This document shows, piece by piece, positions 17,677 to 44,239 of a DNA stretch of 64,000 nt. The position numbers and the translations under genes were made by a program. The notes under the pieces are model-generated. The model worked only from the letters and a program-made list of their open reading frames with translations, made no database searches and had not been told where the DNA came from. Source of the DNA: Oikopleura dioica (taxonomy: Eukaryota > Animalia > Chordata); assembly GCA_907165135.1 (NCBI GenBank), contig OU015569.1, positions 10,354,001-10,418,000 of the forward strand. Reading direction: 5' to 3'. The first letter of the stretch is position 1. The number at the start of each line of letters is the position of its first letter.

Positions 17677-20600
17677 ATGAGCCAGAAAGACAAGTCAGAA
17701 CTCATTTATCGCAGAGTTCGAGAGATTTACGAAACGGAAGAGACGTTTGTCAATAAGCTTAGGAAAGGTCAACTTTGTCAGCTTTATTTGTTTTTGCTTA
17801 ATTACGCAGAAAGCGGCTAGTAGTAGAGACCGAATTAAAGAGAGTTCATCAGCGCTGGAAAGAAAGGCATCGAGCAGATACCCGAGCTGAACAATGGCCT
17901 CTGTGAAAAAATCTCAGACGTTATTCACGCCTTGCGTCCGGGTATAAAAGAACTAAACGTGTACAAATACTTCATTCTTCTATTCTAGTCCTTAATTTTC
18001 ACAATGAATATCTACTTATCAAGTTGAAAAAATGTGATGGGCAAATGGATGCAGGAATGAGTTAACAGAGCTCTGTAGTAAATTCGCGAATTAAAGTTAG
18101 TCACAGTATTTCTGTATTTTCTGTCTACGCGAGTAACTCAAGGATCAGACATCAGAATGTCAAAAGTTGCGGATATCTTCTGTGAACTGGACAACGAAAG
18201 TCTTTTTGAAGAACATTACCGGACTTATATCAAGCACTATGCAAAGTACACTCATTTTACGAAGCTGATGAGTCGGGAAGAATACGCGCCCATTCAAGAG
18301 CTGATTCAAAATAGCTTGAAACTCAAGCTCGGCCACGACGCATATCTTGTGGAGCCAATTCAACGGGTCTGCCGATATCCAATTCTCCTCAAAGCCGTGT
18401 TAAAAAGTGCGGAAGACACGAACTCTCCGGCAGCGGCAAAACTCGCGACGGCGACGGAAATCATGGAGAAGCAGGCAAGAGTGATCAACGAGCTGCAACA
18501 GACTGCGGACCATTTTATAGATGCGCGCGATGAATCTGTTGTCAGAAGAACAGTTAGAAAAGCTCGCGGAAAAGCTCTTCGAAGGGATAAAATTCACAAA
18601 GCAAAGGATCACAATTTTGTGTCGAAGTTTTTCAACCAGCCGACTTTCTGTGCCCACTGCACCGATTTTATTTGGGGCATCAACGCTAAGCAAGGATTCA
18701 AGTGCACTTGCTGCCAAGTCTCCGTCCACAAGCGATGCTACAAGTACATCAATTTCAACTGCACAAGAAGAAGTGATGGAACAATCAAAGCCTCACTAGA
18801 AACCAAAGCTCACGATTTCGCAGAACAGAACTATTATAAACCGACATTTTGCGGACACTGCGGCGTCCTGCTTGTCGGATTTACGAAACAAGGCCTGCAG
18901 TGTCGAATCTGCTCGCTTAACGTCCACCGCAAGTGCAAAGATCTGGTGGTGGGCTGCATTCCAGAGTCTGAACGCAATGAACGCTATGGCCGAATCAACC
19001 TCAAAATTGAAATTTATCAACGACGGTGCCATATTGATATTTTTCGTGCGCATAATCTACCTCCGATGGATGCTAATGGCTTCTCCGATCCCTTTGTCAA
19101 GATATCCATAGCTTAGGGTTTTAATCTTTTACTGATATTGACAAAGAGCAAACAAATAACACTTGCACATCTTTAGTAACAGTTTAAACGACTTTTGATC
19201 GTTATGAATTCACTTGAAAAACCCTAAAATAAGACCCAGAACCGAAAAATCAGAAAATCAAAAAAATGAAGACAGAAATAAAGTCAAAGAACCTCAATCC
19301 AATTTGGAACGAAAGTTTCGTTTTTGAAGTCGGCCAACTAGACGTCTCATCCCGAATTATCGTCTCTGTCTACGACCACGATTCCTTCGGCAGCAATGAT
19401 TTCATCGGTGCAACTTCTTTCTCCATTTCCGAAGTTCAAAAAAGCACTGTCGACGGGCTTTATCGTCTGCAAAATCCAAGAGATGGTCGCCTTTTCAATC
19501 ATTTGTTGGAGCACAATACGAACAAGTATGGCGAGCTCATAGGACTGATGAACATTAAAAAATCCGACGATGATAAATCGAAAGTTGCTCTTAGCGACTT
19601 TGACCTTGTATCCACGATTGGAACGGGGAGTTTCGGACTAGTGCTTCAAGCAAAGTTGAAATCTGGACGAAATGTTGCCCTCAAGAAACGCGGTTAAAAT
19701 AATAACTTTTCATCGTAAACAAATGTTGAAACTATTAGACCATCGAAAGTCGAAATAACCCGCATAAAAGTGCATCAGCAAAGGAGAACTCAATACCGAA
19801 GCAGACATTGATGCAGTTATCGAGGAAAAAAAGACGCTTCAGCTGTGCAGAGAGTGCAATTACATTGTGGACATTTTAGCTACGTTCCACACACCTGAGT
19901 ATGTGATGCTTGCTCTTGAATTCCTACCGGGCGGCGATCTGTACTTTCACATTATGAACTCTGAATTCAATGTCTTCTATTTGAACGATGTGCTCTTCTA
20001 CACGGCTCAAATTTCCGAAGCCTTGGATTTCATCCACACCAACAAGATTATCTACCGGTAAAAAGAGCCACTATATCACCAAGTATTTTCTAATAATGAT
20101 CAACACTCGCGAAAGAATGAATTTAGCGATTTGAAATTGGATAATGTCGTTTTGGATTCGAAGGGATACGTGAAACTGGTCGATTTCGGTTTGGCAAAGA
20201 GCGTGGAGGAAACAAACGGAAAGTCGAGAACTTTTTGTCAAGGGTCATTAAATTTGAGTTAGCTGCAGTCTTGTTATTAAATGCATTTATAACAAATATA
20301 AATGCTCAATTATTTTTGACCCCGAGATAAGTGGAACACTCGAGTACATGGCTCCTGAGATTTTGGCGGGATTCGAATATTCCTATTCTGTCGATTTCTG
20401 GGCACTTGGAGTTTTAATCTTCGAAATGATCTACTCGATACGACCATATCAATCCCACGACGAGGAGAAACTAAAGCAAATGGTCCTGGAGGACCCGATT
20501 CGCTTCCCAAGACAAATCGTAGAAAACACCATCCCTTCTTCTGTTCAAAGTCTGCTCAAGCTGCTTTTGACCAAGAGTCAAGATGACAGACTCAAAAGCT

Positions 20601-20910
20601 ATAGAGAAATGAAAGAACACGCGGCTTTTGAAAATTTCGACTGGGAAGGGTTGAGAAACCGGTCAATCATACCTTCAGTTATTCCAAATGTGGAGTCCAA
20701 TTTGAACTTCGACCCTGAGCTTGCACATTACAGGAAGTGGTTTTGCATTTTCTTTTTTTGGCATGGATCATGATTCATGGACGATTTTAAAAACCAAAAA
20801 AAAGTCCTCAATTATCGCAAGTGCAAAATGTAAATATCAACTTGGATCTGTTCTTCGACAACTTCGAGGAAATTTTCTGTGAAGACTTATTGATAAATTC
20901 TGCTAAATAA
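17677..20910 (+). CDS. RhoGEF (DH) domain fused to a conventional protein kinase C (C1A-C1B-C2-kinase)
   Basis: DH motifs: VREIYETEETFVNKL, VLNFHNEYL, YLVEPIQRVCRYPILLKAVLK. Pseudosubstrate-like RGKALR. Two C1 domains. C2 domain with MDANGFSDPFVK and YDHDSFGSNDF. Kinase motifs GTGSFG, VALK, YRDLKLDN, DFG, TFCGTLEYMAPE. Nine exons. Confidence 0.9.
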
Positions 20911-21111
20911 ACGTTCTTTGTTCTCACCTTCCTAATTTCATAAAAACTGCGGTATTTCCAACGTGAGTAAATGAGTAAGTCAGTGGGTGAGGTATTTCTC
21001 GGGAAAGCACCTGCATGAGTACATTTTTGTTCTGCCGAATGTTCGTGCCCTCTGGCGTGGCGGATATAAACGTGCGATTGTGTTCCAAAAAGATCCATTC
21101 ACGAAGAAAAA

Positions 21112-21822
21112 ATGAAAATTTCTGCATTATTTTTGAACGTTGTCGTAAGTTTTAAATCTTCTCCAGAGATAGAAAATTGACCCTCGAGATAATTAATAAA
21201 ACGAGTTCAGTTTTCTACTGATCCAACTTCGACCGAAGCTGCCGAACAGTCCAGTACAACTGTGGTTACAACGACAGGATCAGATTTAGCTGCTACAGGA
21301 GCTTCATCTTCTTCGACGGAATTGCCAAGTTCGTCGACGACAACAACAGAAACGCCAGCAGAGTCTGAGCCATCGGTTGTTCCCGTTTGCCCGCCCCAAA
21401 GTGTCCCATCCGTAGAATATGATATGAAAATCAAGACCACCGGAGATCTCTTCGCCGGCACAGATGATCCCGTCTACATCATGTTCAACGGAGAGAACGT
21501 TTCAACTAAACTGACTCAAATTCCGGATGACCCACAACCTTCTGACTTTGAACGAGGGCAAACAGAGTAAGAAGAAAAAAATTAAAAATAATTTTCAAAA
21601 GTTCTTCTCAGCGAATTTACAGTAACAGTCACTGGAATCGACGAAATCAAATCGGCGACAATCATCAAACCAGGAAACGACAGGTGGTACGTGGAAGACT
21701 TCTCGCTCACCGCTGGAAACTCTACTCTCGAGTTTGATTGTTTTAAAACGCGAGTCGATGGCTCCCAAAAACCGCTCGTTTGTACACTAAAAGAAGATGC
21801 TGCTGATGATAAATCTGAATGA
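21112..21822 (+). CDS. Secreted Ser/Thr-rich protein with a PLAT/LH2 domain
   Basis: TATA-like atataaa at about 21064. Signal peptide MKISALFLNVVFS, mucin-like stalk, then YDMKIKTTGDLFAGTDDPVYIMFNG...DFERGQTDEF...WYVEDF (PLAT). Two GT-AG introns. Confidence 0.8.
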
Positions 21823-22453
21823 TTACAGACACTTGTGATAATTTACTTGAATTCTAAATAGAATTTCTAAGAAAAAAAATTGTTAATCTCCATTCGATCT
21901 TTCAAGAGAATCTGGGCATATCTTGACCTGTTGTTGGTGCAAGAGTTTACGAAGAGGAAATTGCGAGCGAAGTTGACATAGTTTTAAGTTCTGTCGATTT
22001 ACTGTCTTGACACAACGTACGCATTTAGCACCTTCTCGGGGAAGACTACAGTTGTTGGCACATTTCGAGGCGAGATGAATCTGCATTAAAATAAATTCCC
22101 CTGGATAAATTTGGAAAATAAGCAGACAACGGGAAAATAAATTTTTGATAAGGAGAGACACAACGCGTGCCTGTTTTTGATCATCAGGAAAGTGTTTAGA
22201 TAAGCTTCCAGTCTATGAATTTTTCAAAACGCAGAAAGCAAAATCAATCCAAAAAAGTTGGCACTTGGCTAGACTGAAGCAAGTGTAGAGAGAAGTTTGT
22301 GCGTTTACTCTAGTATCGAGATACGCTTCTGAGGCGATAACCCCACTGAATGTGAAAAGCCCTTTCGATTAATAATGTATTTCATTTCGGTCGTTTATTA
22401 TAGTTAAGAAAAGATGCAAGAGTAAAGAAAAAATGTGAATACTGCACCAAGGC

Positions 22454-23235
22454 ATGGACATCAGAGATTTACAAGAAAAAATTAGCCAGCTAGCGGCAAG
22501 CACAATTAATGACTTTGCGAATCAAGTTCAGGTAGTAGCAACTCGCAGCGTCACTCCCCTTTTCTTGAGCATTTAGACACTCCTCAATGATTTCAATTCA
22601 ACTCAAAATGCCATTCCTTCCAATGAAACAGGTGAATTTCGTTTAAAATGAGTGCTTTTTCGAGTGAGTTTCGAACTTTCTTTATAATCGGGTCAAAGAA
22701 TTCTTCAAGAAATTCTTCAAGAAGTCAATTTGCTTTATCGAAACCGCGTAAAGTTACTGTCATAACTATCCTTCAACACTGAATATTTTGGAATCCAAAT
22801 CATGCCCGAACAGAATTTTCCCCTTCTGGCAATAATTACGTTTTTATTCTTTCGAAATAATGCTTTTTGATTATTTAAAGATTTATTTAATATCCATTGA
22901 CTACATAAACCCTGTCACTAATTGCTTCAAGCTATAAACCTGACTTATCTTTTTAGAAATAGAAGCATCCACAGAAGAGTTTCTATCAGGAGAGTCAGGA
23001 CGTAATCTAACAGAAACAAACGAACACTCGACTGGATTTCATGGAACCACCACGCTTATTATTCTCTTCGTTCTTTTAGGCATCGTTCTCGCCGCAGCTG
23101 TTGGCACACGAATATGGTAGACTAGAGGACTTCATTGAAAACCTGGTCTAACAAATCTCCTTCAGGAACAGATGGCGGAAAGCAAAGTCAAAAGAGGAGG
23201 ACCGTCGACAAGTTTACTTGTATAGTTGGTACTAA
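22454..23235 (+). CDS. Small single-pass membrane protein of unknown function
   Basis: Four GT-AG exons in frame. N-glycosylation sequons, TM segment LIILFVLLGIVLAAAVG, basic cytoplasmic tail ending YLYSWY. Confidence 0.55.
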
Positions 23236-23710
23236 CATGGCCTGATGCTTTTTGCGAGATAAACTGCTCCATAAACCTGCGATTCATAATTCTGCCTCAT
23301 AAACTGCTCGTTTTTGTAAATATTAAAATAAAAAAACGACAAGATTTGTATGAAAGCCATGTATATTTATCCTGACAGAGAAGAAGAAAAAGGGTGCGAC
23401 AAAGTTGTTCATAAGATTTTAGTTTTCGAACTCATGAAATCTTATGCTTTCGTGTTTTAAAAAGTTTGTTACGTCCAGAATGGAGGAATCATTTATTTAA
23501 GCCAATAAATTAAATTTAGGTAAAGCTGTAATGAGATAGGGTCAAGACAACTTAGAGGGTTCTCAATGGAGCAATAAATAATATTCGATATGTCTGTGAT
23601 AGGGCTTTAAAATCTTTTCAAAAAGAATGATCAGAATCTCAAAATTGATCATTCTAAAAATTAAATAAGAAGTTAAAGCCTTGCCTAATCTGTTGCTTTG
23701 TAAATGTTCT

Positions 23711-24910
23711 TTACTTGAACTTTCTCAAGTCCTCAGAGCGAACGACCTTCATGGTCTTAGAAGAGGCAAACACTCGCTTGGTGCCGACTGTGACCAAGAA
23801 GAAGACGGGAACGAAGAGGCCAAGGATTCTCATCAAAGCGAGTTGTCGGTTATCCTAAACAATTGATTGATCTACCTACAAAAATCTGCTTCTTTTACCT
23901 TGGAAACATCGGTGGAGTATCGCAGGAAGGTGACGATATCTTTAGCGATCTGGGACATGTATGGTGGAGTGTCATCACCCATCTCCTTGTAGTCAACAGT
24001 TTCGTTGTAGATAGGCTTAAATAAACACTGAGGAAGGGATTTATAGAGTTGCATCAGTACCTGAGCCATACCAATAGCACCACCAGCGAAGTAGGCATTG
24101 TAGTTCATGCCTTCAGCGACTTGGACACCAGCTGGGGGATCGCAGTAGCCAGTGAGAAGCTAGAACATATATAGTTAATACAATTGTTGACTGTAGGGAT
24201 GACAGTGGAACTGGACTTACAGAGTAGAGGTAGTTCTCGTTGCCTTCTCGGGCCCAGCAGATGAGGGAAAGATCTGGGGGGAGGGCACCAGCGTTGGCGG
24301 CTCGCGCGGCCTTCTCGTTAGCGTATGGCTTGGGGATAGTGTCAAATGGCTTGCATGGTCGAACGACGGGGTTGCCTTCATCGTCGGGGGTGTCGTCGAC
24401 GCACTCGAACTCCTTGGCAATCTTCTTGACTTCTTGCTCGGTGTGGGACTTGCCGATCAACTCTCGGAAGTAGAAATACTGGAGAGAGTGGCAGGTGGAG
24501 CAGACCTAATTGACAGCGAATTGAGAATCGTTTCGAGTAGAGAGATAAAAGCGCTTACCTTCTGGTAGACGTACCAGCCTCGTCGGAGGGCAGCGGCATC
24601 AAGGGCGTTACCGAACTTGTTGAAGTCCCACTCGTAGGTAGGAAGGTGGGGTCCGCCACCGGATGCCTTGGCCTTTTTCGATTCCGTGAAGCCTGAATAG
24701 GATTTTTTCAAAATCACTTGATGATTTTCGGCAATTTTTTAATTTAATTTATCTTGAATTTGAATGCATAATCTTTGGCAAGAAATCTGTTTTTCCTGAA
24801 ATTGATTTTTTGGGAAATATCTAATCATTCGTACCGTCAAGGGAGACGAAGAATGTTCCAACAGCGCCGCCGGCGAGTGTTCCGGCTGTAAGTCGGCGAA
24901 TCGCTTGCAT
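23711..24910 (-). CDS. CYC1: Cytochrome c1, mitochondrial complex III
   Basis: ALRRGWYVYQKVCSTCHSL (CxxCH), ARAANAGALPPDLS, YFAGGAIGM, QIAKDIVTFL, C-terminal TM helix. Confidence 0.95.
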
Positions 24911-25153
24911 TCTAGAACCGAAGAATTATATTCTCTTGCGACTACGTCATAACGTGAATAGTTTGCCCCCGGGAGCGTGCGTTAGCTATGCAATGAGTTT
25001 GAGTGTTGACTCACACTATTGGTCTGATCTTATTTCACGCGCCCGAAGCGAGAAAAAAGTCCTTTTTTTCAAGAGTTTTTTTATGAAAAGAATATTATGT
25101 TGCAGTATAAAAATAGAAGCTCAGTTGTTAAGAATATATAAGAATAGCAAAGA

Positions 25154-27346
25154 TCATGTAAGAGAAACACCAGTAACTTCTTGGCAGAGTCCGTCACCAT
25201 GCGATCGTTCACTGAGGAATCGAGACATTCCTTTGACTCTAAAGAAAAAGGGATTTACTTAACTAGTAGAGTGGAAGCGCCCTTACCTTGAGAAATATTG
25301 TCTTGCTTGGAGATGCTTTCTGTGAACCTTCTGGAACATAATGGGACCGTAACCGTCCTCGGGGCTGGCCAGACTCGCGTGCGCTTCTTCTTCTCTTTTG
25401 GTGATAAGGAAGCAATTCCACGGGCTCCAGTTTTCAGATTTTTTCCACTTGCAGAGGGTGAGATCTTCCTGCGTGTGCGAAAGGGCCGACTTCATCGACC
25501 AAATATTCAAAACGAGATGTCGAATGTCGCCTTCAGCCATTACATAAACAAGCTAGAAAGAAAGAATCACGTGTTATATAATCGCGCCGCAATAGCAAAA
25601 GGTGCTCTTACATCTGAGTCTGGATACTTCTTCTTGAGTTCTTTCATCACTTGCTTGATGTCGATAATATCAGGATGAGGATTTGGATTGACTTTTCCGC
25701 GGTGCGCAGCGGTGAGCTCGAAGTTAGGCGGAGCAGCGTAAGGCCAAATTGCAAGAGGCCAGTGTGACAAGTAATTCGACGATGAGCCCATTTTGACGAC
25801 CTTGCTTCTGAGTGCCTCTGCGTCCTGAAAGAGAAAGAAGTGGTTAGAGAAGACGAGAGGAGGTCTACGTACCTGAGGAACAGTGAGATGGCGGGCCGCT
25901 TCTGGATTGAACTTAGGATCTCGACAGAATTGCAAGTAAAGATGGAGAATACGCGCGCGTAGTCCATTGAGCAGCGACGAGTTGACGCCGCGTACAAGCA
26001 TTTCGGCCTCGCGCTCGGCCAAGCCAATCAGTTCTTTAGTGAGTTTACAGTCGGGCACGCCGGCAACAATGTTCTTAAGGGTGAGCAGCATGTCGATGCG
26101 CTCTTCACGATTGAGGCCTTCCATTTTCAGTGCGTTGTAGAGATCTCGAAGCTCCTTGGCGCGGAGCGTGTAGCCCGTTTCCATTTCAAACTGGCCGGGT
26201 TCTCCGGTCCAATTCACCATTGAAATCCACTTGCCGTCCTTGGCCTTCCATTTTCGTGGGGCAGCACAGGCGTTCAAGAACTTGGCAATTTTCAGGTCTT
26301 AATAACAGGGCTAGAAGTGGATCGATTCGTGCAATTAACCTTTAGTTTCTTGATTGGCTCGGATTTTATGTCGGCCAATGGCGGCAACAAGTTGTGCAAC
26401 TTGCTCTTCGAGAGTCGCCAAAGCAGCCTTTTGTTCCGCCAGGGTTTCGGAGTTCGCCCGGATAAGGGCTACCTGCTCATTTCGCCAGCTCGTAAGCGCC
26501 GCCCAAACCAAGTCGAAGTCTTTTTTAGAACGCGGGTTCAATCTCCCTTCCAGATTCTTCTGGCGCCGTTTTCTACGTTCTTCTTCGATGCGCTCCTTTT
26601 CTTCTTCGAGCCAGTTCTCATACTAAGCAACTAAGATTAAGAACTTGATTCAATGAAAAAGGCCTTACCGCTTCTCGATCTTCTTTCAACTGCGCAGTAA
26701 TGATTTTAGCAAGATACCGCCTGAAGTATTTCTGAATAACAACCGCCGCATCGTTCCGTCTTTTTGCTATCGTATCTGCAAGAGTGTATTCACCAGGCGT
26801 GATGATGATGTCGTCACGGGTTGAGACATAATGGCCAGGCTAAAAAAAAACATAATTTTCCGCCGCTAAAAGGCGTTTTTTACCTTGGTCATCTGAGTTG
26901 AAGCATCCTGCGAAGTTTGGAAAGTGACATTTTTGTACTCGTATGTTTGAGTATCACGATTGTTTCGCTCGCAGGTGATCTTCTTGATGGCTCGATTGGT
27001 TTGCGTTTCGGCATTGTGAAACTCTGATTTTTTTTAAATACAAAGATGAGATCATTATCATTTACCGTTGTGGTTGAGTTTGTGCCTCCAGCCACCAAGC
27101 CATTGTTTTTTGCCTGTGTAGGGATCGATCTCCACTTTAGTGGGAATATAATCTGGCGTTTCGTTAGTCTCCTCCTTGATTTCAATTGGAGTTATGGGGA
27201 AAGAGATATGTAGTTAATTCAACCTGAGGAGTTATTGGCGTATTATTTACAGGATCTTCGTATTGGACTGGGCTTGGATCGTCAGGCAGCGGATGGACCG
27301 CGCCATTCTCATCCCAATCTTGCGTTCCCTCCAACGGGTGCTCCAT
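25154..27346 (-). CDS. IQUB: IQ and ubiquitin-like domain-containing protein (ciliary radial spoke)
   Basis: KQWLGGWRHK...FHNAETQT, NPRSKKDFDLVW, RAKELRDLY, FNPEAARHL, WSPWNCFLITK. Confidence 0.88.
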
Positions 27347-27517
27347 CTTAATGAAAAAGAGGATTTTAGATAAAAACTTTTCCGGGTTGATAGTTCTAGA
27401 GATGGTGTATTTAGATTTTTTGTATAAAATTAAATCCCAGGCTTTAAGATATATAAATAAAAAAATACAGAAAAAATACAGAGAAAATTTTTCAATGGAA
27501 AACTAGTAAGAAGAAGG

Positions 27518-28763
27518 TTAGACAATCATTTCCAAGTCGCAGGCATATTCGAGCATTTTTTCTGTAACTTCCTTCGAAGGGATGCCTTCCTTGACTTCTT
27601 CACGTGGGAATACGATAACGTTCTCGTCGTAGTCCCATTTGTGCTTCGAGCAGATCTCCTACAAATTAAGATTGTCGGAAAAAGGCGAAAAAAATGAACC
27701 TTGAGTTGTTCTGGAGTTTGGAGGCTCATCAGGCGATGAATTTCGCTGGTCTTCATTTCTTTGTAAGCAGATTCAATATTTGCAGCGATTTCGTCACGAA
27801 CAGTTTCTCGTATGAGCTCCATGAAGTAGCGATAGTCCGAAACGGGGAGCATAAAACTGCGATCAAGTATCTACGCGTTTTAGAACTTCATTCGAAAATT
27901 ATCCTCCTACCCGGTTATATCGCCCTTCCATCAAGCATCGTTCAATTTTTAGCGGCTGCGTGATAAATGGGCTTTTCTCCATCTCTTCGAAAGTGAACCG
28001 CTCAACTTCTGTATGAAACTCGGCGAATTTTTCTCTGCCAAAAGGCTGAAATTTTCCAGCATAAGGTTCATGGAATAGAAAATTGTTCAAGTTACCTCAT
28101 GAGATTTAGTCCAAGAATTTTGACTCGATCATAGGACTTTGGAAGGACTTCTCTGAAGTCAAAGTGATAGGGCTTGAGCTGGGCGATGTATCTATGAAAA
28201 GCTGGAATGTCACGAATTTCGAGGGAGTATAACGCGCCAATTTCGAGCATCTGTCGCGCGACCCGGAGTTCCTAAAAGATGTTGAGCTTTTAGACTTCAG
28301 CTAATTATCTTCAATAAAAGAACAGAAGAGCATGCTGGTCGATAAGTGGGTAATTGAATGATAAATGTATGACGATTGGTTTATCTTAGAACCTGTCACC
28401 TACCCTGTTCTTATGATATTTATCATATTTAAATTTCGGTTTATTACTCTTTGGCTCTTCTTCCGGAATGTCCATCTTCTCATCCTCGGCCTCACAGCCA
28501 TTGTCCTTCAAAGGAAGGAAATTCATGCCCGTGATGTGAATTTTGAGTTTGGCGAGGGTTTCACCAGCTGCCTCGAGATTTCGATTTTTAATTGAGAACT
28601 CTGTGAGCAGCTGATTGATAAGTTCCATTGCCTTTCGATACTTTTCTTCGGCCGGATCAAGTGGCTTCAAAATCTTACTTCTCGGCGGTCGTCTCGCCTT
28701 CATTTCTTCCGACATTTCAGGCAACTTTCTGCGTGCTTTTTCCTTTGATTTATCGTCTGCCAT
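27518..28763 (-). CDS. PSMD8: 26S proteasome lid subunit Rpn12
   Basis: ARQMLEIGA...RYIAQLKPYHFD, ILGLNLM, AEFHTEVE, LMEGRYNR, ETVRDEIA, EYARDLEMIV*. Confidence 0.93.
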
Positions 28764-28976
28764 TCTGTAAAATGTTAACGTTTCACTTTTTAGGTAGAAC
28801 GACGCGAAGTTTATGACTTTGAAGAGAAGTTGGTTAGTGAATAACCAGTAAAATAAATAAATAATAAATAAAAAATATACAGAAACGAGGAACAGTTATT
28901 TCGTAAGGAAAAAAGTGGCTCTTTCTTGCTAGTAATCTTCTTGATAGATGAATAGTATTAAACACATCGTCGTGGT

Positions 28977-31627: not shown

Positions 31628-31699
31628 GACTCCTTGGCGCAACGGTAGCGCGTCTGACTCCAGATCAGAAGGTTGCGTGTTCGAATCACGTAGGGGTCA
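31628..31699 (+). tRNA. tRNA-Trp (anticodon CCA)
   Basis: 72-nt cloverleaf GACTCCTTGGCGCAACGGTAGCGCGTCTGACTCCAGATCAGAAGGTTGCGTGTTCGAATCACGTAGGGGTCA with A/B boxes and a downstream T-run terminator. Confidence 0.97.
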
Positions 31700-31928
31700 A
31701 ATCCTTTTTATATTTTTTTGTTTATTTTTGCTAATTGTAAAATTCACTGAAGATTTCATAGGTTTTTCCATTGATGAGTAATTGTAGTAACAGTGAAGAG
31801 AGGTTGAAGAAGTCTCAGGGAACGATTCTTTTGGCAGCGTTAAGTTTGGTTCAAGTCTTCCTTGAAAATCGGTCTGTTTTCATAATTGCGTTAATTTTCA
31901 TCCTAATAATCTCTTCGCGGCTTTTCTA

Positions 31929-34608
31929 CTAGAGCGTCCAGGAAGGTTTTTGACGCGTGTTGGCACCGGCACGTGACGAGATGCGGCTCCGCAGGTAGCC
32001 GCGGCTATCTGTCGAAGTTTTGCGGCTTAAAAGGGCTCGTTGTCGGGTAATAGAATCGTTGTTTTACCTTTTGGCCTTTTTCTCCTTTGACTTTTTGAGT
32101 TTGAGAGCAGCGTCACTATTGCTTCTTGGTTTCACTAGAAAAGAGAGGCTACAAAGGACACCAATAAATATGATTTCTAACCTTTGTAGATCCTGACCAA
32201 CCAGTTTTCGGTTGTGTAGGCTTCCTCTAAGTGCTTCAACTGAAAATATCCAGATAAGTTATTCATGAAAACGAAAATGTAACTAACTTTTATATTCTTG
32301 ACGCCGATTTCCGTATTCCTAGTCCGGTCAAAACCCTGCGGTCCATTCATATCTCCATGATCGAATTCCCCAAACCTGTATTATAAACGGATTATTTTCT
32401 AGTAAAATAAGCATTCGGTACCTGTAGAAGCTTGTTTTGTACATGACACTGTCTGTGAATGTTTTTGGCGCGCTCGCATCGACTTTGTATTCTCCCTGAA
32501 TCCGTCGGATAGTTCAATCATCTTTGATCATGAAGTTACCTGTGGAGTGAAATAGTTGGACTCCTTGATTTCATCTGGATGCTCTCCTTCAGCGATTCTG
32601 ACCATCCAGAGGAACTTGTTGATGTCATCGCCCGAGTAGCCGATGACACCACCGAAGATGACGAGAACGTAGTCAACATTGAGCTCCTGCATTATTTCAT
32701 AAGCTTTATCTTCATCACTAGCCATTGCTTTGCCCACCATGGCGATGTGCGTGTTGTTCCAAGTATTGTTATCAACGAGGGTAGATCGATCGGCCATACC
32801 GGCGATTTGATAGCCGTAGTCCCACCAGGACATGACTCGGGACTCGTCGGGGGTGTTCGTTCGGAGCCAGTAGTATGCTTCGCGAAAGTCGTCAAGAATG
32901 TTTCGTGTTCCATCGCGGTTGTGGGTGGAAAGAACGACGGAAGGTGAGGAGTAGGCGTTGGAGGTGACCCAGGTGCAGTGAGTGCCGAACATGAACAAAA
33001 TCATCACGAGCAGAATGCAAATAATCGAACGCAGTTGATTGGCCACAGCGATTTCTTCTTCGGTTGGAGCTGGTGCGGATTCATCCTCTTCACTCTCGGC
33101 AGGAGGCGGCTTCGAGGAAATGAAACGGTTGAACAACTCGCTAAACACGATCGCGGAAAGAATACAGACGATAGGAGTAAGGGTGAGCATGAGGCGGACC
33201 ATGACGCCAGCGAAATAGGCAGAAAACACGCCGTAAATGATGAGGAAGACGCGGGAGTCGTCGTATTGCTGGACACAGAGCCACAGTCCAGCGGGGAAAA
33301 CGGCGACAAGAATGTGTAAGTCAAAGAAGAAGGAAGTCCAAGTTGTGGGCTGATGTTCGGACACGGAAGAAATGATAGGAATATGAATGCGAGCGTAACC
33401 AGTGTCCCAAAGCGAGTAAAAACGACCACTCCAGGGGGCGACGATCCCCGAGGCCGTCAAGAAGATGATAGCGGCGAGACCAAGAGCGAATACGAGAAGA
33501 CTGAATATCCAAAAAAGCCGCTTCATTTTTTGCTCGCCTAGGCGATGTTTCAGGAAACCGAAAAAAGCGATGACTTGTACGAAGCCGAAAACCCCGAAAG
33601 AAGCCATGTGCTCACTTGTGCGAATCGGCTGGAATCCAACAAAGGGAATGTTCATTGCACACAGTTGCCCGATCGTGTAAAATGTCGTGTACGCTGTGTA
33701 ATGTCGAAGTGAAAAGCGACCGATGAGGATCAGGACGAACACGTGGAGTGGGATGATGTTGATTATGTACACGTATCCACCCCAAGCAGATACCATGTAG
33801 AAATACGACAAAGCGCAGAAAGTAGCCCACTAAAAATTAAAGTGAAGAAATTGAGTTGGCAATTCATAAGAGACATACCATTATAGAACCACTTTTCATC
33901 GCCTTGATCCACAAGAAATAGGTAAACTGGAGAGCGAAAATAGCGATTCCTTCATTGTCGTAAGAGCCAGCCACTGATCTTGAGATGTATCCTTATGTAA
34001 AAAAAGTTTAAAATGGATAGATAATCTTTGTCTTACCTGGTGCAATAGAGATAAAAGCAGCAGCAAATAAGCCTGCTCCATCGGACCAGAGCTCCTTGAA
34101 AAAGATTTAGGGGGTGTTTCAAAGAGCATGTTACCTTAGTCAAAAGATAGGTTGAAAGAGCTGTTAGCCCAGAAAACAGGGGAGCGGTAAAGACGCAAAC
34201 ATCCTTTATAAGTACAGAAAAGCCGAGAAAATTGGAGATCGAATGGATGATCCCTGCTGTCAACATGAGGCCAGGATAAACAGTGCCGCCGACAATGCGG
34301 CCAAGCGGATACCATGCTCTTTCGTCGAACCAATTTAAAAACTCGTAGAATCCGTGTTCTGTCAAACGCTTTGTCGCACGGAAGTTGAACCAGGGATCGA
34401 ACTCGTGGATGATCGATTCAAAGCGGATCACAGCAAAAAGCCTGCGATTGACGGGATCATCATTTTTTATCAAAGGAGTTTCTTCTTACCTGGAACTGAA
34501 TCCGAGAATGCACACTGATGTTAGAATAACAATCGTTAGTAACGACTTGATTGCTTTGACGTTGCTTTGACATTTCAAGTCGACGATCGGTGTCACGGGA
34601 TCAGACAT
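31929..34608 (-). CDS. STT3B: Oligosaccharyltransferase catalytic subunit, STT3B type
   Basis: [56 protein letters not shown] (B-type). 3' end uncertain (stop at 32005 or 31929). Confidence 0.93.
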
Positions 34609-34848
34609 TTCAAAATCATGCAACGATTTCTTAAAAAACGATGTTCGCTACTTATCATTAGGATGGGAAAATACGCGACTTATCACAGCTACTGATAAAT
34701 TCAAAAATTGTTGATAGAACAATTACAAATTAATTTCACTTTTTTTAAACATCAACGTTTATTGGGTGTTTTTTTTCGGTATTCAATGGCAGTAAGTGAG
34801 GTGGCAAATAAAATTGAGCTAAATGGAAAGCAAGAAGAATTCTTGCTT

Positions 34849-37800
34849 TTAATTTTCTTGCAAGTTGTTCTCCGTCGTGGACGACACGGCTTCGGACAGA
34901 CCTAAACAATCATTTCAACGATTGGTTTTAAGAAAAAGTCTCGTACCAGGAACGGAGTGATCATTATCCGTGTTCTCCCCAAAGAAATGGAATCGTTGTC
35001 CGCTGGACTGGACGGCTTGAGGAGCAGGGGAAACAAGGGCCTGGTTTCCTTCGTGCTGAGATCTCGTACCAACAAGGGTGGGCGTATGTGGCACGCATCC
35101 GTCATCATCATCGTCATTTGTGACGTGGATGATGCCTAAAAAGAGTTGTGAAGAAGCATTTGAAGAGGAGTTTTTTACCAGGAGTAGTTGGGATTCGAGC
35201 AGGAATGGATCTTGGCCGAGAGAGACCAGTGATTCCCTCCAATGGTGGAGGCACCGAGCGAACTGGCGGATCCACCTCAACAGTTGTCGAGACAGTTGGA
35301 GCATCGTCGATTTCAATCGACTCGTTCGCCGCTGCTTGTTCATCCTGCTCGTCGTCAAGGATCTCGACAGGCTCATTATCGATGTCGTCGTTGTTATCTT
35401 CAGTCATGTCAATAACTTCCGGCGCTTCTTCGGCTGCGGGAACTGCGCTTTCGTCCTGACCTTCTTCGTCCAGCTAAATAACAGTTAACATAGTTCAGCT
35501 AGAAGGGGTTACTTACGTTTTCGTTGAGATCGTTTTCCTCGTCGATGGTGATGGGCTCTGCTGCCGGCTCGGCCTCTTCAAGATCATCAATAGGAATTGA
35601 TGTCGACGGCTCTTGGGAAGAAGAAGCATCTTGGGACTCCTGAGACTCTTGATTGATACGGAATCGCTTTGATTCGCCGTCTTCAGAGTCATTGGTGTCT
35701 GATCGACCGCGTTTTTGAGCGCGTGGTGGGGAGCTGATCATGTCCGATTGAGTGGGACCAGACTCGACTTGGATCGTCTGCGCTGGAGCAATCACAGTTG
35801 TCGAGCTTGATACAGCTTGGGACACAACTGGCTGTGTCACGACAGGCATTATTGGCTCGTCCGGTTGGCTGGAATCTGGAACCATGGTGACGGATGAAGA
35901 AATCGACGAAGCCTGAGGAACGAGATTCGAGGCGCTGTCCGCTTCGGCATTGACGACAGTAGAGTTGGAAGAAGGCATGGGTGAAATGATCGCCTGGGCA
36001 GTGGTGCTTTCCTGGACGTCTTCAACGCGAGTCGGAACGACATGTCCGATGACGCGGCCTTGGGGCTTCTTGGGCTCGCGCTGCTGCGGAGTCACTTCAG
36101 CGACGGATTTCGGCTCTGGATTAGATTTTCAGTAAAAAAGTTGTCTAAAGCATTGAACTCACCTGTGGCAACCTTAGGCTGAATGGCCGGTTGCTCTTTA
36201 GCTTCTGGAGTGATCTCTCGCTCCTTGGCTTTCTCTTCGTCCAGCTCCTTCTTCAGCGCAAGAATCTTGCGCTTCGCGTTTTGCATGAGGCGGTTTTTGT
36301 CCTCTTTCGCCTTGTTTAACTCTGCATCCATCTCTGCCTGTCGCTTCTTTTGGGCTTCGATATCGTCTCTTCGCGCATTCACTTCTTTCTCGAGCCGCTC
36401 GTTCAGGTTTTTGATTTTTCCCTGAAACATTTTTTTCATTATGTCCATTTCCGCCTTCGTGTCGCTCTGCATGCCGCCGAGGATGTTTTCGTCGCCTTCG
36501 GTTTGCGTATCTTTCGCGGTGCTGAAATACCATATAATTTTAAATAAACCTTTCTAAAATGTACCTTTCAGGCTTGTTGCTCGCTTTAGCCGCGTCTTCT
36601 TTGAGTTTTTTGTTCTCATCCCGATGCTTGACAGCGATCGTTCGAAGACGCTTGACCTTGTCCTCTGATTCCTTGAACTTAGCCTGGAGAGTCTCCAGCT
36701 CTGTTTTGCTCGACTAAGATGATGATTTTTATTTCGGAAAAGTAAAATTGGTAAATTACCGCGTTATCAGCCGAGCTCGCCTCAAGAGTTTTTTTGTCTT
36801 CTTCAAGCTTCGCGATCTGAGTCTTAAGCGCTGCGGTTTGACCCTGAAATAACCTCTGAAAAAGAGTTTCCTTTGAAGATAAATATAGTAACCTTGAATT
36901 CGAGAAGCTCGTTTTCCTTGCCCCGGAGCTCGGCATTCTTCGCATCGACAGTCTTTTTCCACTACGATTAGGTATCAATAAAAAGGTAATCATTTTTAGT
37001 GCTTACTGTATCAGACTCCAGTCGAATCTGCTTGACCTTTTCGATCGATATCTTGCCGTGGTTTGCCTTTTTGATCTCTTCCTGATGCGCTGTTTTGAGT
37101 TTTTGGACTTCCTCGGCGTGCGCTTTCTTTGCCTCAGTGAGCTCCTCATCTTTCTTGTCCATTGTCTGCTTTGCCTCGGCTTCAAGTCGGATGAGTGGGC
37201 GCAGTTGGTTCTCGAGCTCGGCGATTTTCTGCTCGTTGGACTTGATCTCCTCGAGTGCGCGGTTCTTTTCATCGCGAAGGACGCAGTTGGACTCTTTAAC
37301 AATGTTAAGTTGGTTAACAGAGTCGACGAGTTTTCGGTGCTGCTCTTCCGTCATCGATGGCTTTTTGGCCAAAGCCTCAAGGTCGGACAGATGACGTTTT
37401 AGCTCGGCGATCTGATCTTCCTGCATGCGAGTACGAGTCTGGAGTCGAATGACCTCGGTTTTGGCCATGTCTCGCTCGCCCTCGGCGATAGAAACATCTC
37501 GACGCATGATCTGTGAGAGTTCAAGAAGTCCAGAACTGTCTTCAGTGATGCTGATCTAAACAATGAAGATAAGTTGACGACTTCGGACTTGTGAACAAAC
37601 CTGGCTAGAATCGAGATTGGCAATTGAACCTCGTCGTCTTGAGTCAGTGACTTCTTTGTTTAAAGCTTCGAGCTGCTCATGAAGAATATTATTCTTTCGG
37701 CTCTGTTCCTCAATTCGAGTAGCGCCCTAAATCAATTGTCATCAAAGCACAAATATCGATAAAGATACCTCCTCAACGCGTTTCTGAAGCATTTCTTTCT

Positions 37801-40800
37801 CTTCCTTCCACTCGCTAAATGCTGCGTCATTTCGGGCCTTTTGGACGAGGTTTTCTTCGATGAGTTGGCGATTTTTCAACTTTAGCTCATTCTGCTCCGC
37901 CTTGTACTTCTGAACCTCCGAAAGTGCTTGTCCACTGGCAACTACTTGGTTCATGTAGTTGTCGTTCAAGTGGGAGAGCTCATCGGCCTTCGCGTTCAAG
38001 TTTTCTTTCAAGCTCAAGATCGTTGAGTTGAGAGAGTCGATCTAATTTAAATACAGTTCTTATCGAATATTTTAAGCGAAAAAATACCTCAGTACGAAGA
38101 TTTTGAATGTCTTCCGTGCCAGACTCCTTTTTGAGTCGCTCGATTTCGCTACTTTGATCAGAAATAGTTTGATCTCTTTCGACGACTGTTTGCTGCGCCT
38201 CCTCGATTTCTTTGTCTTTGCAAAGCTTAATTTTCGTGAACTCTTCGATGCTCTCATTCATTCGCTTCTCAGCATCCGACGCGATCTTTTTGAAATCAGC
38301 AATTTGAACATCTTTTCGCTCAAGATCTTCTTTCAAAGATTTTATATCGACTTCGTATCGCTTGAGTTCGTCGCTGAAGTCCGAAGCTGGCTTCATTTGG
38401 GAACCGGGTCCTCCTGCTCTCGTCGGACTCTTCGAAAATTGAAGCATCTGCCGTTGCTTGATTCGTTGGAGCTCTTGAGCGAGAGTCGAGTTCTTAAAAA
38501 TAAGTTGACTTTAACCGTTACTTTTTTAATAAATAACCTTGTTGCGCTCTTCTTCAAGCTTTTTAGAGACGGTTTCTTCCTGCTGCTTGAGTTTTTGAAT
38601 GGCGTCGGCATGCTCCTTGTGGATGCTCTCGATTTTGCTCTCATAAGCTTGCGTCTTGGCGATTTCGGCGTTGAGATCACTCTCGAGCTTGATAGTGGTG
38701 GCGGTCTTTTGCTCGGCGAAATGCTGCTGCAGTTTCGTCATAGTGTCGAGCACGGCGCTCTGCTGGAGTTCGTTCTTCTCAATATTCTTGAGTTGTTCTT
38801 TCAAGTTGTTGATTTCCCACTCCAAGTTGGAGTTCTTGCTCTTAGAAGCGGCCAGGGCAATTTTGAACTGCGACTTTTCTTCAATTGCTTCCATGAGAGA
38901 AGCGGTGATGTTGGACGAGTTCTCGCTCTCCTTCTCGAGCGTTTTTACCAACTGCTCGTGGGATGAGTTAAGCGTCTCTACCTGCTCCTTGCATCGTTTC
39001 AGCTCGTCCTCTTTCGTTACAAGAACAAAGTCTTGGTTCTTGATAGTGACCTCGTACTTGCTGATCCTGCAGGCTAAATCGTTGCGCTCCTTTTCGTGAT
39101 TAACAATCTCCGAATATTGACAAGTGTTTTTCTTTTGAAGCTCTTCGATTTTGAACTTGCACTGGTCCAGTTCGCGCTGCAAAGAAGCCACAAGTTCCTT
39201 ATCCTTCGCATTCGAGAAGGATTTTCTTGGAGAAGGCACCAATGCGGAGGTTTCTTCGATGGAACGAACACCATCGTCCATCTCATTCTCTTCGTCTTCG
39301 ATTCGTCGCCGTTCGAAGTACTCGTGCCAACTTTCCCGTTGCTTTTTGATTGCGTTCAGCTCAGTTTCGATGTTGCTACGTTCGATCTTCTCAAGCTCGA
39401 GAAGATGACCCATCTCGTTGAGCTTTGTTTCCAGCTCTTCCGTGTTCAAGTCAGTAAAGGCCTTGTACTTGAACTGAAGGGCGATGAGCTCATTAGTCTT
39501 GTCGGAGAGCTGCTTCTGGGTGTCAGTGATGATGTTATCTAAGTTACTTCCGTCTTCGATTTTGTGAATCAAATCGGCATTGCGCATGTTGAGCTCCTTG
39601 ATTTGAGCGACGAAGATGTCATTCTCTTCAGCGAGCTTTTGGCGCGATGTTCTCACTTGATGACACTCGAGTCTAAGCGCGCCCAATTCTTGATTCGAGT
39701 CTGCCAACTGATCCGTTAGACTCTGGATAAACCCTTGCGACTTTTCATACTCGTCGCGCATTCGCTGGAGCTGGGGCTCTTTGTCTTTGATCTCGCCCAT
39801 GATTTGACGCTGCATCTGCTGATATGCCTCGTTTTCCGCCTCGAGTTTTTCCGCAAGCTGGGACTTAGTGATGTACTCTGAGTACATCTCGGTGAGTGTC
39901 ATGCCTGATCGGAGGAGCTTGATGGCAGCAGCAGCTATTGGACTAAATTCCTCTAGCTCGTTCTTGTCAAAAGCTGGCCCGGTTCGTTTAACCTCGGAGA
40001 GCATGTCGTTGGCAAGTTTGAGCTCTTCCTCCATCTTGGTTTTTCGCATTTCGAAATCTTTCTCGAGTTCCTCGCAGCGCTGGACGGTCTCCTTCAGCTG
40101 CACGTTCTGCTCGAGAAGCTGGTGCATATCTGCACGGAGCTCTTCGACAGTTGCGCTACTTTCTTCGCCCTTCTTTCGATGCGTTTCTAGCTGCGATTTC
40201 AGAAGATCAACAACGCGGCCCTGAGTGAGAATGTCCGTTTTGTAGAGCTGCTCAGAGTCGGCGAACTCCTTCGCTCGCTCTTCAAACTCGTTTCGTTGCT
40301 GGAGAACCTGGTTGGTTTTGTACTCCAGGTCGCTTTCCAAAACTTGAATACGGTTCTCCAGCGATTCGATCTCTTTTTGTGCATTGTCAGCTTCACCCTT
40401 TCGATTTTTTCGATCCTCATCAGCAAGTTTTTTTGCAGTTTGATATCTCACCTTAGAGATTTCGGTTAGACAAATTAATGTAAAGAGAGATACTATCTTA
40501 CCTTTTCGTTATCGAGCTCCAAAGTGAGACTTTGATTTTCGATCTCTAGCTTTTTTGTCGTTGATCTCAGTCGCTCAATAGTGAAGCCATCGTGTCTCCG
40601 TTCGATTTCGAGAGTGTCCAACTGTCCTTTCACCTGGTTTTTCTCTTTCAACAATGTATTCGCCTTCGTCGCTGTTGACTCGTACTCTTCCATCAGATTC
40701 GTGAGCTCTTCGTCTTTTTGTTTGAGCACTTGCTCCAGCCGCGACTTGTCTGTCAATACTCGATCTCTAAAGATTTAAAGTATATTATTTGAAAGAGATG

Positions 40801-41242
40801 GAAATTATTTACCGCTCGACTTTGATTTTAGTCAAATCGCCATCCTTGTTGTGCATATTTCGATGACATTCCGCAATTTGATCTCGTAGTGCGTTGAGCT
40901 CGGAGAGAAGGGCAGTAGATGCTCGTTTGTCTTGATCATCTTGTTCGGCAGTAGATTGATTCAGGGCAGCAGAGGACTCGGTCGCTTTTTCGAGCAGGTG
41001 TTTTGTCTAGTTAAAAAGAAGATGAAAGAAGGTATTTAAGGAATTATAGGTTCACCTCATCTAACTCATTTTTAAGTCGCTGAACTTCGATCTTTTTTCC
41101 ATCATCATCAGCATCTGGCAGTGCTAGTTCGAGCTTTTTGATGATATTAGAGTTTTTGATCGTCGATAACTCTATTGGTGTCAGTAACTTGCCGAGTTTA
41201 TCTGTCGATAGTTGGGCCGAAATCTTTCGCTTCGGTGCCATC
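34849..41242 (-). CDS. TPR: Nucleoprotein TPR / Megator (nuclear basket)
   Basis: Very long coiled coil with TPR-like motifs SPIAAAAIKLLRSGMTLTEMYSEY, MRRDVSIAEGE and LNIVKESNCVLRDE. Acidic disordered tail with VPHTPTL. Confidence 0.85.
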
Positions 41243-41764
41243 TTAAAATTATAAATTTGAGTGAAGCATAATAGTAATGATTGTATAGTTTCTCGCAGTT
41301 GTTGAAGATGAATGAAGGGCAGTTAGTATAGTATACAGTATATGGATGGAACTTTGTCTCTTTGTAGGTCTCTTTCTGAAGGATCTACTTGCTTCACTCG
41401 ATATAGCAAGGTCGAATTATTAAACTATCTCTGTCCGAATGCCGATTTTAAAGACGAGTTGCTGACGTGGCCTGTAACGGTTGATCGAAAAAGATCAGTT
41501 TTGCGATAAAATGGGTCGTTTCTGATTTTTCGTGGTGCTCAGACGCCAACTTGGAGACGTTTTTTAGCAAAAATAAGACCAATCCAAGAAGCGCACATGT
41601 TGGCCAGCTAGCTTCAATCTAAAATAAGTGCAGTTGACAATTCTTGAACTTTATTTATGTATTGAATGGATACGCGAGGAATAGACAGAAAGAAGAAATG
41701 TGGTCAAAATGAAGAAGCAAGAATGAAGAAGATGAAAATGGATAACTCATAGTGGCGAACTCGC

Positions 41765-43012
41765 TCAATAGTCGTTGTAGTCATCAAGCTGGGCTCGATA
41801 GCCAGGCTTGTTTCGATAAAGAACATAGTGCTGAACGATGAAAAGTGCATCGAAGAGAATGGAAAAGAGCCCAAGGCCGAACTTCGTTGGATCGCCAAAA
41901 ATGTTGCTGAAGTCGTTGTTGTTGACGCCTTGAAGCATCATTTGGAGCATTGAAAGGGATCCTCCAGTGAGATCAAGCAAGACGTTGCCAATTGACCAAC
42001 CTTCAGTTGATTTTCGCCTTAAAATGGAAGTTTTAAACAAAGAGCTAGAAAAAATTCATTGCACCTGTAGTTCATGAGAGCCTGTGGGATATATTTGACA
42101 ATTGTAATGGCGAGTTTGACGGAAGACAAAATTATCAGGTAATCTAGCCAGAGCATACTACCAACGGCGGGAGCGATACAGCCCAAAACAGCAGCAAGAA
42201 TACAAGCGCCGGAAAATAACCAACCGAATTTGCTTACTTTTTGACCATTTTTGTCGTAAATGACAATTTGGAAGCCAGTGAAGGCAGAGGCGAGAAACGC
42301 GTGGAGAGAAAAAAAAATCTAAAATGATTTTGGAAATACTGAAATCAAGGAAGAGTATTTACATCATTCGGCAAGACAGGATTGACACCATCATGCCGTC
42401 GCTCTTCATATTGTGCGAAAATATTCTTGCTGAAGAAGAGCGCCAAATTGTACGCACTGTAGCACGCGAATCCGATGGTGTTGAGCAACACAAAATCAAA
42501 ATTCAATCCCTCAACATTTTTACGCTTGAAATTGAGCCAGATTTGTGGGTAGAAGGATACTGTCCAGGCGACAAAGTACATCCATCCGATGACCTCGTTG
42601 AAGACATAAAGTGATTCGGATTTGATAACGTTCACTCGGGTCACGTCATCGGTCGAGTTTGTGTCGTTGAAATTGATGAACTCTTGGCCGATGGAGACAG
42701 ACTGGAGGATAATGGATGAAGTGTTACTGTCCAGATGAATTTTGCAGTTGTAGGAAGAGAGTGACCCAGAGAGACATGTTATGTTCACTAAAGTTTCCGA
42801 TAAGCTCAAAGGAAAACTAGATTATAAAAATCGAAAATGCTGGCTTTACCTATCGAATCGGTATAATTTGTATAGATGTATGCGTCTTTCGCTTCGTCTG
42901 AAGAAATCTCCCAGCTTCCATTTTTCCCATTCTGTATCCTTATAGAACCAGGTATCGCCACATCCGAGCCGAAACCGAATAAGAGCGTTGAAATAAAATG
43001 CAGATCCAACAT
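41765..43012 (-). CDS. CTNS: Cystinosin, lysosomal PQ-loop cystine transporter
   Basis: [67 protein letters not shown]. Confidence 0.94.
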
Positions 43013-43059
43013 CCGCTTCACACGAACTCTTAAAACTACAGGCTAAGTCAGAATCAGCT

Positions 43060-43555
43060 TCATTCCTCAAGACTATTGACAGTAATATACAGTGAGCAAT
43101 CAGAACAAGGGACGTCAACAGGAAAGTCCACTGTATTCCTGTCTATAGAAAACACTCCTTGGCATCTACATTGATAACTTAGATATCCGCTATCTTCGTC
43201 ATCGGTTTCAAAGTCGAGCAAATCAAGTGTGCCTGAAGAAGGAGCACTTTTCTTGATACCAAATCGTTTATCATAATCTACAGGGGGATACTGGAACAAA
43301 AGCTATTATAAATATTCAAAAAGGCATCTGTATAATATCAAATTTCTATCCCCTATTTGCTAATCGTAACTCTTCATCAACAAGAGTCTTGTAGGCAGTA
43401 GTTAACCGGTCGAAAAGTGAGCTACTGTATTGAGTGTTCGAGTTTTGAGAACCGCACTTGTCCGGATGAGCCGACCTTGCTTTATTTCTATAAGCAGTTT
43501 TTATCTCGCTTGTGCTCGCGTCTGACTTGACTCCCAAAATATCATAATAAGACAT
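43060..43555 (-). CDS. DNAJC24: DnaJ homolog C24 / Dph4 (J domain plus CSL zinc finger)
   Basis: YYDILGV...HPDK J domain. CRC...CSDCSLYI zinc finger. One intron, probably 43278-43359 and non-canonical. Confidence 0.9.
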
Positions 43556-43703
43556 TCTGAACCGTTATCACATTTATTCACGGACACAAGTTTTTTTTCG
43601 TTTTCAGTTGACTAAGAGTTTTTTCTACGTTCTGGCAGCATTGTCAAAATGAGTCTAATTCCGCCTTCAAGGTCTACAGCGGCCGCTGAAGGCGGTGCGG
43701 ATG

Positions 43704-44239
43704 TTAGAAAGTCTTTTTAAAGCCGAACTTCTTCCTTTCGTAGAACAGGTCAGTCTTCGCCGAGCCAAGATTGACAATCTTTGGGCAACCATCTCTGTCC
43801 TACAAAAGATAAAGGTAACTTTCCTTCAATCATATTATTTTTCACCTTCTCGAGCTTGGTGCACTCACGGCAGTAGTACGCGTCCGAAATTCCTGGGCCA
43901 CCACAAATCACACAGCGACCCTGTTTAATTGAAACATACAAAAAAGTTTGACTTGAGCTTGATCTACCTGGAAGGAGCCGTAGTTACATTCGTCACAGAT
44001 ACGGACAAGGGTCGACGGTCGAACATAGGAGTCGCAAATGACACAACGACCATCACACTGGTCAAGGTTTATTAAATACTACTAGAAAAAGGGTATTGAC
44101 ATAACAATCATTCGAATGACCGAAAAATGTCTGGTTTATTGAAATTATCGAGCGTAAACCTCTTCTTATCACAAAGTCTTCCGATGGCAACACCAGCTTG
44201 CTTACGACAAAAAATCAAATCTGGATGATGCTTCGCCAT
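43704..44239 (-). CDS. PHF5A: PHD finger-like protein 5A (SF3b subunit)
   Basis: [25 protein letters not shown]|[14 protein letters not shown]...[20 protein letters not shown]. Four exons. Confidence 0.97.

Follow-up and report, generated by a model that had tools for sequence, protein, structure and literature searches.

How introns that start without GT are recognised and removed is the question raised by a 64,000-nt stretch of the genome of the larvacean Oikopleura dioica (contig OU015569.1 of assembly GCA_907165135.1, positions 10,354,001 to 10,418,000 of the forward strand; hereinafter referred to as the window). Eight such introns, six of them in a protein kinase C (PKC) gene, had been placed by homology in a sequence-only reading, which also noticed their complementary ends. 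In O. dioica, 11-12% of introns have been reported to be non-GT/AG, including GA/GC/GG-AG introns (PMC8008620, PMC7072748). Sequence comparison with related lineages confirmed that the introns are real, with junctions as placed, and supported a functional role of the end pairing. They are probably structure-bridged spliceosomal introns that originated from transposon-derived introns (introners).

The long PKC exon of the window was 100% identical to OKI2018_I69.XSR.g16357 of the Okinawa O. dioica. The coordinates, lengths and ends of the eight introns agreed with the window sequence in every case, and a ninth candidate was added. The features are as follows; positions are those of the window unless a contig is named.

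17677-20895, plus strand: PKC host gene, RhoGEF(DH)-C1-C1-C2-kinase, with six non-GT and two GT-AG introns
17763-17840, plus strand: PKC intron 1, GA-AG, 78 nt, weak 4-bp stem (17767-17770 with 17828-17831)
17942-17988 and 20058-20126, plus strand: the two GT-AG introns of the host gene, used as internal controls
18055-18148, plus strand: PKC intron 2, GA-AG, 94 nt, 7-bp stem (18058-18064 with 18134-18140)
19112-19233, plus strand: PKC intron 3, CT-AG (TT-AG in relatives), 122 nt, 10-bp stem (19113-19122 with 19218-19227)
19686-19770, plus strand: PKC intron 4, AA-AG, 85 nt, stem with a single bulged C (19690-19696 with 19756-19763)
20238-20331, plus strand: PKC intron 5, TC-AG (TT-AG in relatives), 94 nt, 6-bp stem (20242-20247 with 20317-20322)
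20734-20804, plus strand: PKC intron 6, GA-AG, 71 nt, 7-bp stem (20738-20744 with 20790-20796)
43278-43359, minus strand: DNAJC24 intron, CA-AG, 82 nt, 7-bp stem, offset 0
44058-44164, minus strand: PHF5A intron 1, AA-AG, 107 nt, at codons 25/26, 7-8-bp stem, offset 4
62373-62432, minus strand: ninth candidate intron, GA-AG, 60 nt, from a stem-blind gene model, end duplex of -8.2 kcal/mol

PKC introns 1, 2 and 6 and the ninth candidate start with G and end with AG, the form already described for this species; the CT, AA, TC, CA and AA starts of the others fall outside it. PKC introns 1, 2 and 6 are thus ordinary Oikopleura GA-AG introns, and the unusual subclass consists of the five introns without an initial G. 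Non-GT introns were longer (71-122 nt against a median of 46 nt), and PKC intron 5 interrupts the TFCGT motif of the kinase. The ninth candidate was placed by an ab initio gene model and found no anchor in homology; an alternative 51-nt GT-AG reading inside it introduces a stop. The syntenic neighbours TMEM65 and PLAT, aligned with Odb3, contained only GT-AG introns within the window. A scan guided by stems alone returned hundreds of unspecific hits, so that a stem of 6-7 bp is by itself insufficient to define an intron. Among the hits of this unspecific scan was a possible additional G-start intron with an end helix at about 3291-3079 on the minus strand, with a provisional border.

The comparison with complementary DNA (cDNA) and with orthologs covered the six PKC introns; SF3A3-based searches for orthologs of PHF5A and DNAJC24 yielded no usable long contig. 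Two full-length spliced metatranscriptome cDNA contigs (L005 and L006), from lineages other than Okinawa and about 75% alike, each carried the host gene as a single open reading frame (ORF) of 846 aa. When the window exons were mapped singly on these cDNAs, zero offset was found at each junction of introns 1-5, and the junction codons of intron 6 agreed (Y-S-A-Q vs Y-S-P-Q), with an adjoining 4-codon deletion upstream. Since cDNA L006 and genomic contig L011 were identical at 124/124 fourfold-degenerate sites, introns 1 and 2 (GA-AG) and 3 (in its TT-AG form) were demonstrated with cDNA and DNA of one lineage; for intron 2, L006 was compared with both L011 and L012. The join at intron 1 was also seen in poly-A reads of a related lineage, and the AA-AG ortholog of intron 4 in L001 was skipped by six poly-A reads (X5) with exon sequence matching the DNA of L001. 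Poly-A reads at intron 2 were not counted as splicing evidence because their lineage lacks this intron. The junctions of introns 5 and 6 rest on cross-lineage cDNA. The precise absence from mRNA expected of a U2-type intron was thus found in cDNAs and reads of related lineages. Outside PKC, exons 1 and 2 of PHF5A corresponded without gaps to residues 1-25 and 26-55 of solved PHF5A, and no in-frame GT-AG option was found nearby. The DNAJC24 exons encode DnaJ and CSL zinc-finger domains; its putative exact junction was placed by homology, and an in-frame GT-AG alternative was absent within the range scanned.

End pairing was quantified as the duplex energy between the first 15 and the last 20 intron bases, and the controls were 95 GT-AG introns (85 short and 10 longer), mostly ab initio predictions from a model that misplaced most non-GT borders and was employed solely for these controls. 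The mean energy was -9.0 kcal/mol in non-GT introns compared with a median of -2.5 in the 85 short controls (by Mann-Whitney test, p 4e-6 with all 95 controls taken together and p 4e-4 with just the 10 longer ones). Equal stem frequency in canonical introns, which would have spoken against the proposed stems, was therefore not observed in these controls. Own ends also paired more strongly than swapped ends (-9.0 vs -5.2 kcal/mol, permutation p 7e-5), so that the pairing is intron-specific and exceeds a common GG/CC bias. Within PKC there was no selection bias because all six non-GT introns were defined by cDNA, and no conserved stem was found in the two GT-AG introns of the same gene. Complementary ends had been claimed for all eight introns; this stood for the group, but not for PKC intron 1 taken alone (4 bp, shuffle p 0.11). 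Likewise, the offset that separates paired positions was mostly 4-5 but ranged from 0 to 9 across introns and lineages, so that the geometry is constrained rather than fixed. The terminal inverted repeats measured 4-10 bp in the window introns and up to 14 bp in orthologs.

Among orthologs, five of the six PKC intron positions were common to all lineages compared. Okinawa and two metagenome lineages had intron 2, which was precisely missing from the Odb3-type lineage; a loss there is the simpler reading, the comparison being unrooted. Fourfold-degenerate sites were saturated between Okinawa and the other lineages (27-37% identity), and the length and sequence of intron interiors varied, yet pairing persisted in nearly all orthologs. 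Of the stem pairs compared, 29 were unchanged, 7 showed double changes, 5 had a change in one partner that left them paired, and 10 were broken. An A:U pair of PKC intron 3 was replaced by C:G at +4/-9 in relatives, and four double changes occurred in the Odb3-type ortholog of PKC intron 6, where the offset is 9. In 9 of 11 comparisons, which are non-independent, an intron's own ends paired more strongly than chimeras made across lineages, and a 90-nt interior indel between Odb3-type alleles of PKC intron 3 spared both arms. As to the alleles themselves, the intron interiors of those of L001 (1921-2111) and L003 differ by some 90 nt, and the long allele contains a hairpin in its interior and, in inverted orientation, a copy of the intron's 3' end, a potential competitor of the end stem. 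The starting dinucleotides differed by lineage (CT vs TT, TC vs TT, AA vs AG), and no GT start was found in the orthologs of the PKC introns. Standing above controls, specific to each intron, and kept at saturated synonymous divergence with seven double changes, the stem appears to be under selection, and the proposal that the pairing has a function was upheld.

What this function might be was approached through the splice sites. The exon ended in AG in 8/9 introns and A+3 was present in 6/9; taken together, A+3, A+4 and G+5 were present in 19/27 cases compared with 6.4 expected. The match to the U1 consensus, on average 5.6/11, was close to that of GT introns (6.4/11). Every intron terminated in AG and followed an exon G. 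The signal lost in these introns was instead the U-rich 3' tract, with a T fraction of 0.16 at -14 to -4 in contrast to 0.50 in GT-AG introns. The sequence-only reading had taken structure to replace recognition by U1/U6, and the donor bases argue against this. With a U1-like donor kept and the U-rich tract gone, we infer that the stem acts as a bridge between the two ends. In the eight introns, the 3' arms (-15 to -10) read TAAC, TGAC, AAAC or GAC-C and resemble a branch-point motif, so that the branch region may lie under the 5' arm.

An origin from transposons had not been considered in the sequence-only reading; two young insertions, listed below, support one.

1207-1671, minus strand: young miniature inverted-repeat transposable element (MITE), 449 nt, with 21-bp perfect inverted repeats, in the HRDIK-LSN catalytic loop of a kinase
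L002, about 1109-1228, also in L003 and L015: lineage-specific GA-AG intron, 120 nt, with the empty site near window position 16398

The MITE is flanked by a perfect 8-bp target duplication (1671-1664 and 1214-1207) that ends in AG; from the 8-bp length we take the element to be hAT-like. It inserts 457 nt and thus shifts the reading frame unless spliced. The element and the right copy of the duplication together make up a putative scarless CT-AG intron with offset 8 and a GT at +6; an alternative predicted removal, GT(+6)-AG, would cost one S to G change. The 120-nt intron of the Odb3 alleles, identified from DNA, has an 11-bp stem with offset 8 and a decayed 8-bp duplication, with 6/8 bases of the exon end matched at the intron end. 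From these cases it seems reasonably probable that the window introns were born as MITEs whose inverted repeat was kept as a bridging stem.

We propose that these introns would be removed by the ordinary U2-type spliceosome, the U12 system being missing in larvaceans (PMC13326754). Judging from the two young cases, a small DNA transposon would enter an exon and duplicate a target that ends in AG. The left target copy would remain the exon end, and the element with the right copy would turn into the intron, whose first bases would be whatever the transposon end was and whose ends would pair through the terminal inverted repeat. As the lineage comparison shows, the interior and the duplication then decay, a pairing of 4-14 bp beside both splice sites is retained, and the donor retains or acquires U1/U6-like bases (exon AG, A+3, A+4, G+5). 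In the pre-mRNA, the stem may link the weak donor to an AG without a U-rich tract and conceal the GT at +6 to +8, thereby substituting for GT and polypyrimidine-tract definition in early recognition. It would later have to open so that U1/U6 could pair at +4 to +6, and the cut would be made in the N..AG register.

Several points weigh against this proposal. All stems are predicted structures, G+5 is covered by the stem though it is needed for U1/U6 pairing, and the controls are largely ab initio predictions, as described above. In the ortholog comparison, the pairing register was chosen separately for each lineage, which favours pair counts; four of the seven double changes came from PKC intron 6, and pairing was weak for intron 4 in L001 (-3.5 kcal/mol) and for intron 1 in L007. 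Among reads mapped to 5,401 letters, no Okinawa-lineage RNA crossed any junction. Beyond the AG, target duplications left no trace in the nine window introns (18/54 positions match), and no sequence likeness was found among the eight introns or elsewhere in the window. For the eight introns, which have neither duplication nor family, the transposon origin is therefore drawn by analogy.

A stronger role of the helix may be considered for the introns without G+1 (CT-, TT-, TC-, AA- and CA-AG), in which it could mainly set the 5' cut and stand in for U1-based donor recognition. This is kept alive by the TT-AG orthologs of PKC intron 3, in which a helix of 13-14 bp starts from +1 and just 4/11 positions match U1, but we consider it unlikely on the whole.

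Stems might alternatively have been selected at older introns after loss of GT, with no transposon involved, and the helix would then offset the donor loss or mask a nearby GT. The eight introns without target duplication or family sequence are in line with this, as are the initial bases that vary by lineage, so that donors drift. It is made doubtful by orthologs that never start with GT, by the length of the non-GT introns relative to the median, and by the decayed 8-bp duplication of the lineage-specific GA-AG intron.

That the 5' splice site is defined throughout by the stem, in place of U1/U6, or that the introns leave by a euglenid-like non-spliceosomal route, appears improbable. The absence of G+1 from five introns, helices spanning +4 to +11, the long helix of the intron 3 orthologs and a geometry like that of euglenid introns (+4 to +6 with -8 to -6; PMC11282704) would fit such a role. 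It is opposed by the enrichment of A+3/A+4/G+5, the exon AG and the invariant 3' AG described above. Moreover, among the window introns a better U1 match did not significantly go with a weaker stem (rho 0.16, p 0.67), and the non-canonical introns of Fritillaria require the U2 spliceosome (PMC13326754).

The cut could also lie one base upstream, in which case the introns would be G..A, with G+1 retained and A as the last base, as the sequence-only reading had allowed. Every junction does slide leftward, by 1-3 nt rather than the single nucleotide proposed; the five non-G starts then become GC, GA, GT, GC and GA, the mRNA is identical for both registers, and the stem is compatible with either. 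The U1 match, however, totals 50 in the N..AG register and 34 after a slide by one, and is higher for N..AG in 7/9 introns; G+5 would shift to +6, and the 3' AG is invariant only under N..AG. The slide itself thus stood, and the G..A register is about as improbable as a donor defined by the stem throughout.

It is more improbable still that the pairing serves no function and is left over from the ends of transposons, perhaps refreshed in DNA via template switching at the inverted repeats. Inverted repeats are the residue expected of a MITE, and 10 pairs are broken in some lineage, but the arms pair with double changes despite saturated fourfold sites and divergent interiors, and interior indels leave them untouched.

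Finally, an artefact in which assembly indels or misplaced borders hide a true GT donor nearby, conceivable for a Nanopore-based Okinawa assembly (PMC8008620) and in-frame GT alternatives at PKC introns 1, 2, 3, 5 and 6, is largely refuted and very improbable, because identical non-GT starts recur in independent assemblies and metagenome contigs, which excludes assembly indels, the related-lineage cDNAs lack the 1-4 extra codons that GT readings require, the GT at +7 of PKC intron 3 would bring TAG into frame (ORF 18157-19116 stops there), and neither PHF5A nor DNAJC24 offers an in-frame GT in the vicinity.

The proposed bridged introns resemble several known systems in part. The GV-AG introns of O. 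dioica share GA-AG ends (introns 1, 2, 6 and the ninth), exon-end AG and an A after GA (logo in PMC7072748); end pairing, loss of the U-rich tract and CT-, TT-, TC-, AA- or CA-AG starts are undescribed in PMC8008620 and PMC7072748. MITE-derived non-canonical introns have been described in Fritillaria borealis (PMC11282704, PMC13326754, bioRxiv 2025.08.15.670264). They too belong to a larvacean with the U2 spliceosome only, have non-GT starts and inverted repeats at their ends, and build the 3' site from the target duplication, as proposed for the window introns. The Fritillaria introns have mostly AG/AC and AG/AT ends, YAY duplications and splice sites at the repeat ends, whereas the window introns have an invariant 3' AG, a recessed stem, vanished duplications and long-term covariation. 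The introners of Amoebophrya are likewise non-canonical: inverted repeats of 8-20 nt pair their ends, and the borders carry short direct repeats. They differ in belonging to repeated, strain-specific families, in genomes where no U1 was detected (PMC7789003); the window introns are single-copy within the window, apparently old and common to several lineages. Euglenid introns share non-canonical borders, a missing polypyrimidine tract, pairing of about +4 to +6 with -8 to -6 and a probable MITE origin, but have pyrimidine/purine borders, no fixed AG and circular excision by an unknown route (PMC11282704); the window introns keep a fixed AG and U1-like donor bases and do not show the euglenid borders.

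The closest functional model may be the (AC)n-(GT)n introns of zebrafish, in which a helix bridging the ends enforces splice-site pairing and makes U2AF2 unnecessary (PMC4691745). Covariation and the missing U-rich tract suggest that splicing of the window introns may depend on the helix and not on U2AF2. The zebrafish introns are GT-AG-era expansions of simple repeats with long helices (PMC4691745), whereas the window helices are 4-14 bp of unique sequence beside non-GT donors and contain no AC/GT repeats. The window introns therefore correspond neither to active introners nor to euglenid or zebrafish repeat introns. Non-GT introns of Oikopleura and transposon-born introns of Fritillaria were already known. 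A full-text search, with Denoeud 2010 and Henriet 2019 outside its scope, found neither a conserved end stem nor non-G starts described for O. dioica; within that literature, the end stem itself is apparently undescribed.

With regard to the host gene, a RhoGEF DH domain is fused to a conventional PKC, and public annotations cut the gene short (406 aa in Okinawa) or divide it (two separate genes in Odb3), compared with 846 aa from cDNA. A distant homolog (P0152, L014), 42% identical, also carries DH and C1, so that the fusion predates the O. dioica species complex; it gave no alignment across the PKC junctions. Elsewhere in the window, an intronless SF3A3 (47621-49126, minus strand) and PHF5A share a strand and are 3.4 kb apart, which places two genes for U2 small nuclear ribonucleoprotein components within one run of tightly packed genes. 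Non-coding blocks at 8200-11500 and 13361-13513, flanking a forkhead gene (11967-13094), were 73-91% identical to Odb3 (L015) despite saturated synonymous sites and are likely regulatory elements, to judge from their conservation. Relative to PKC, the TMEM65-forkhead block has opposite orientations in Okinawa and the Odb3-type lineage.

About one in nine O. dioica introns violates the GT/AG rule, and present work seeks the cause in parts of the spliceosome, such as U2AF paralogs and N6-methyladenosine (m6A) in small nuclear RNA (PMC13326754); a cis-acting stem would be a simple and testable rule in an animal kept in the laboratory. Such introns disrupt gene models, as in the PKC host gene (406 aa or split instead of 846 aa), and those that start with C, T or A and end with AG probe the tolerance of the spliceosome for losing the G+1/G-1 interaction. 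The stem would join the birth of introns from transposons to a lasting function, an inverted repeat turned into a splicing aid.

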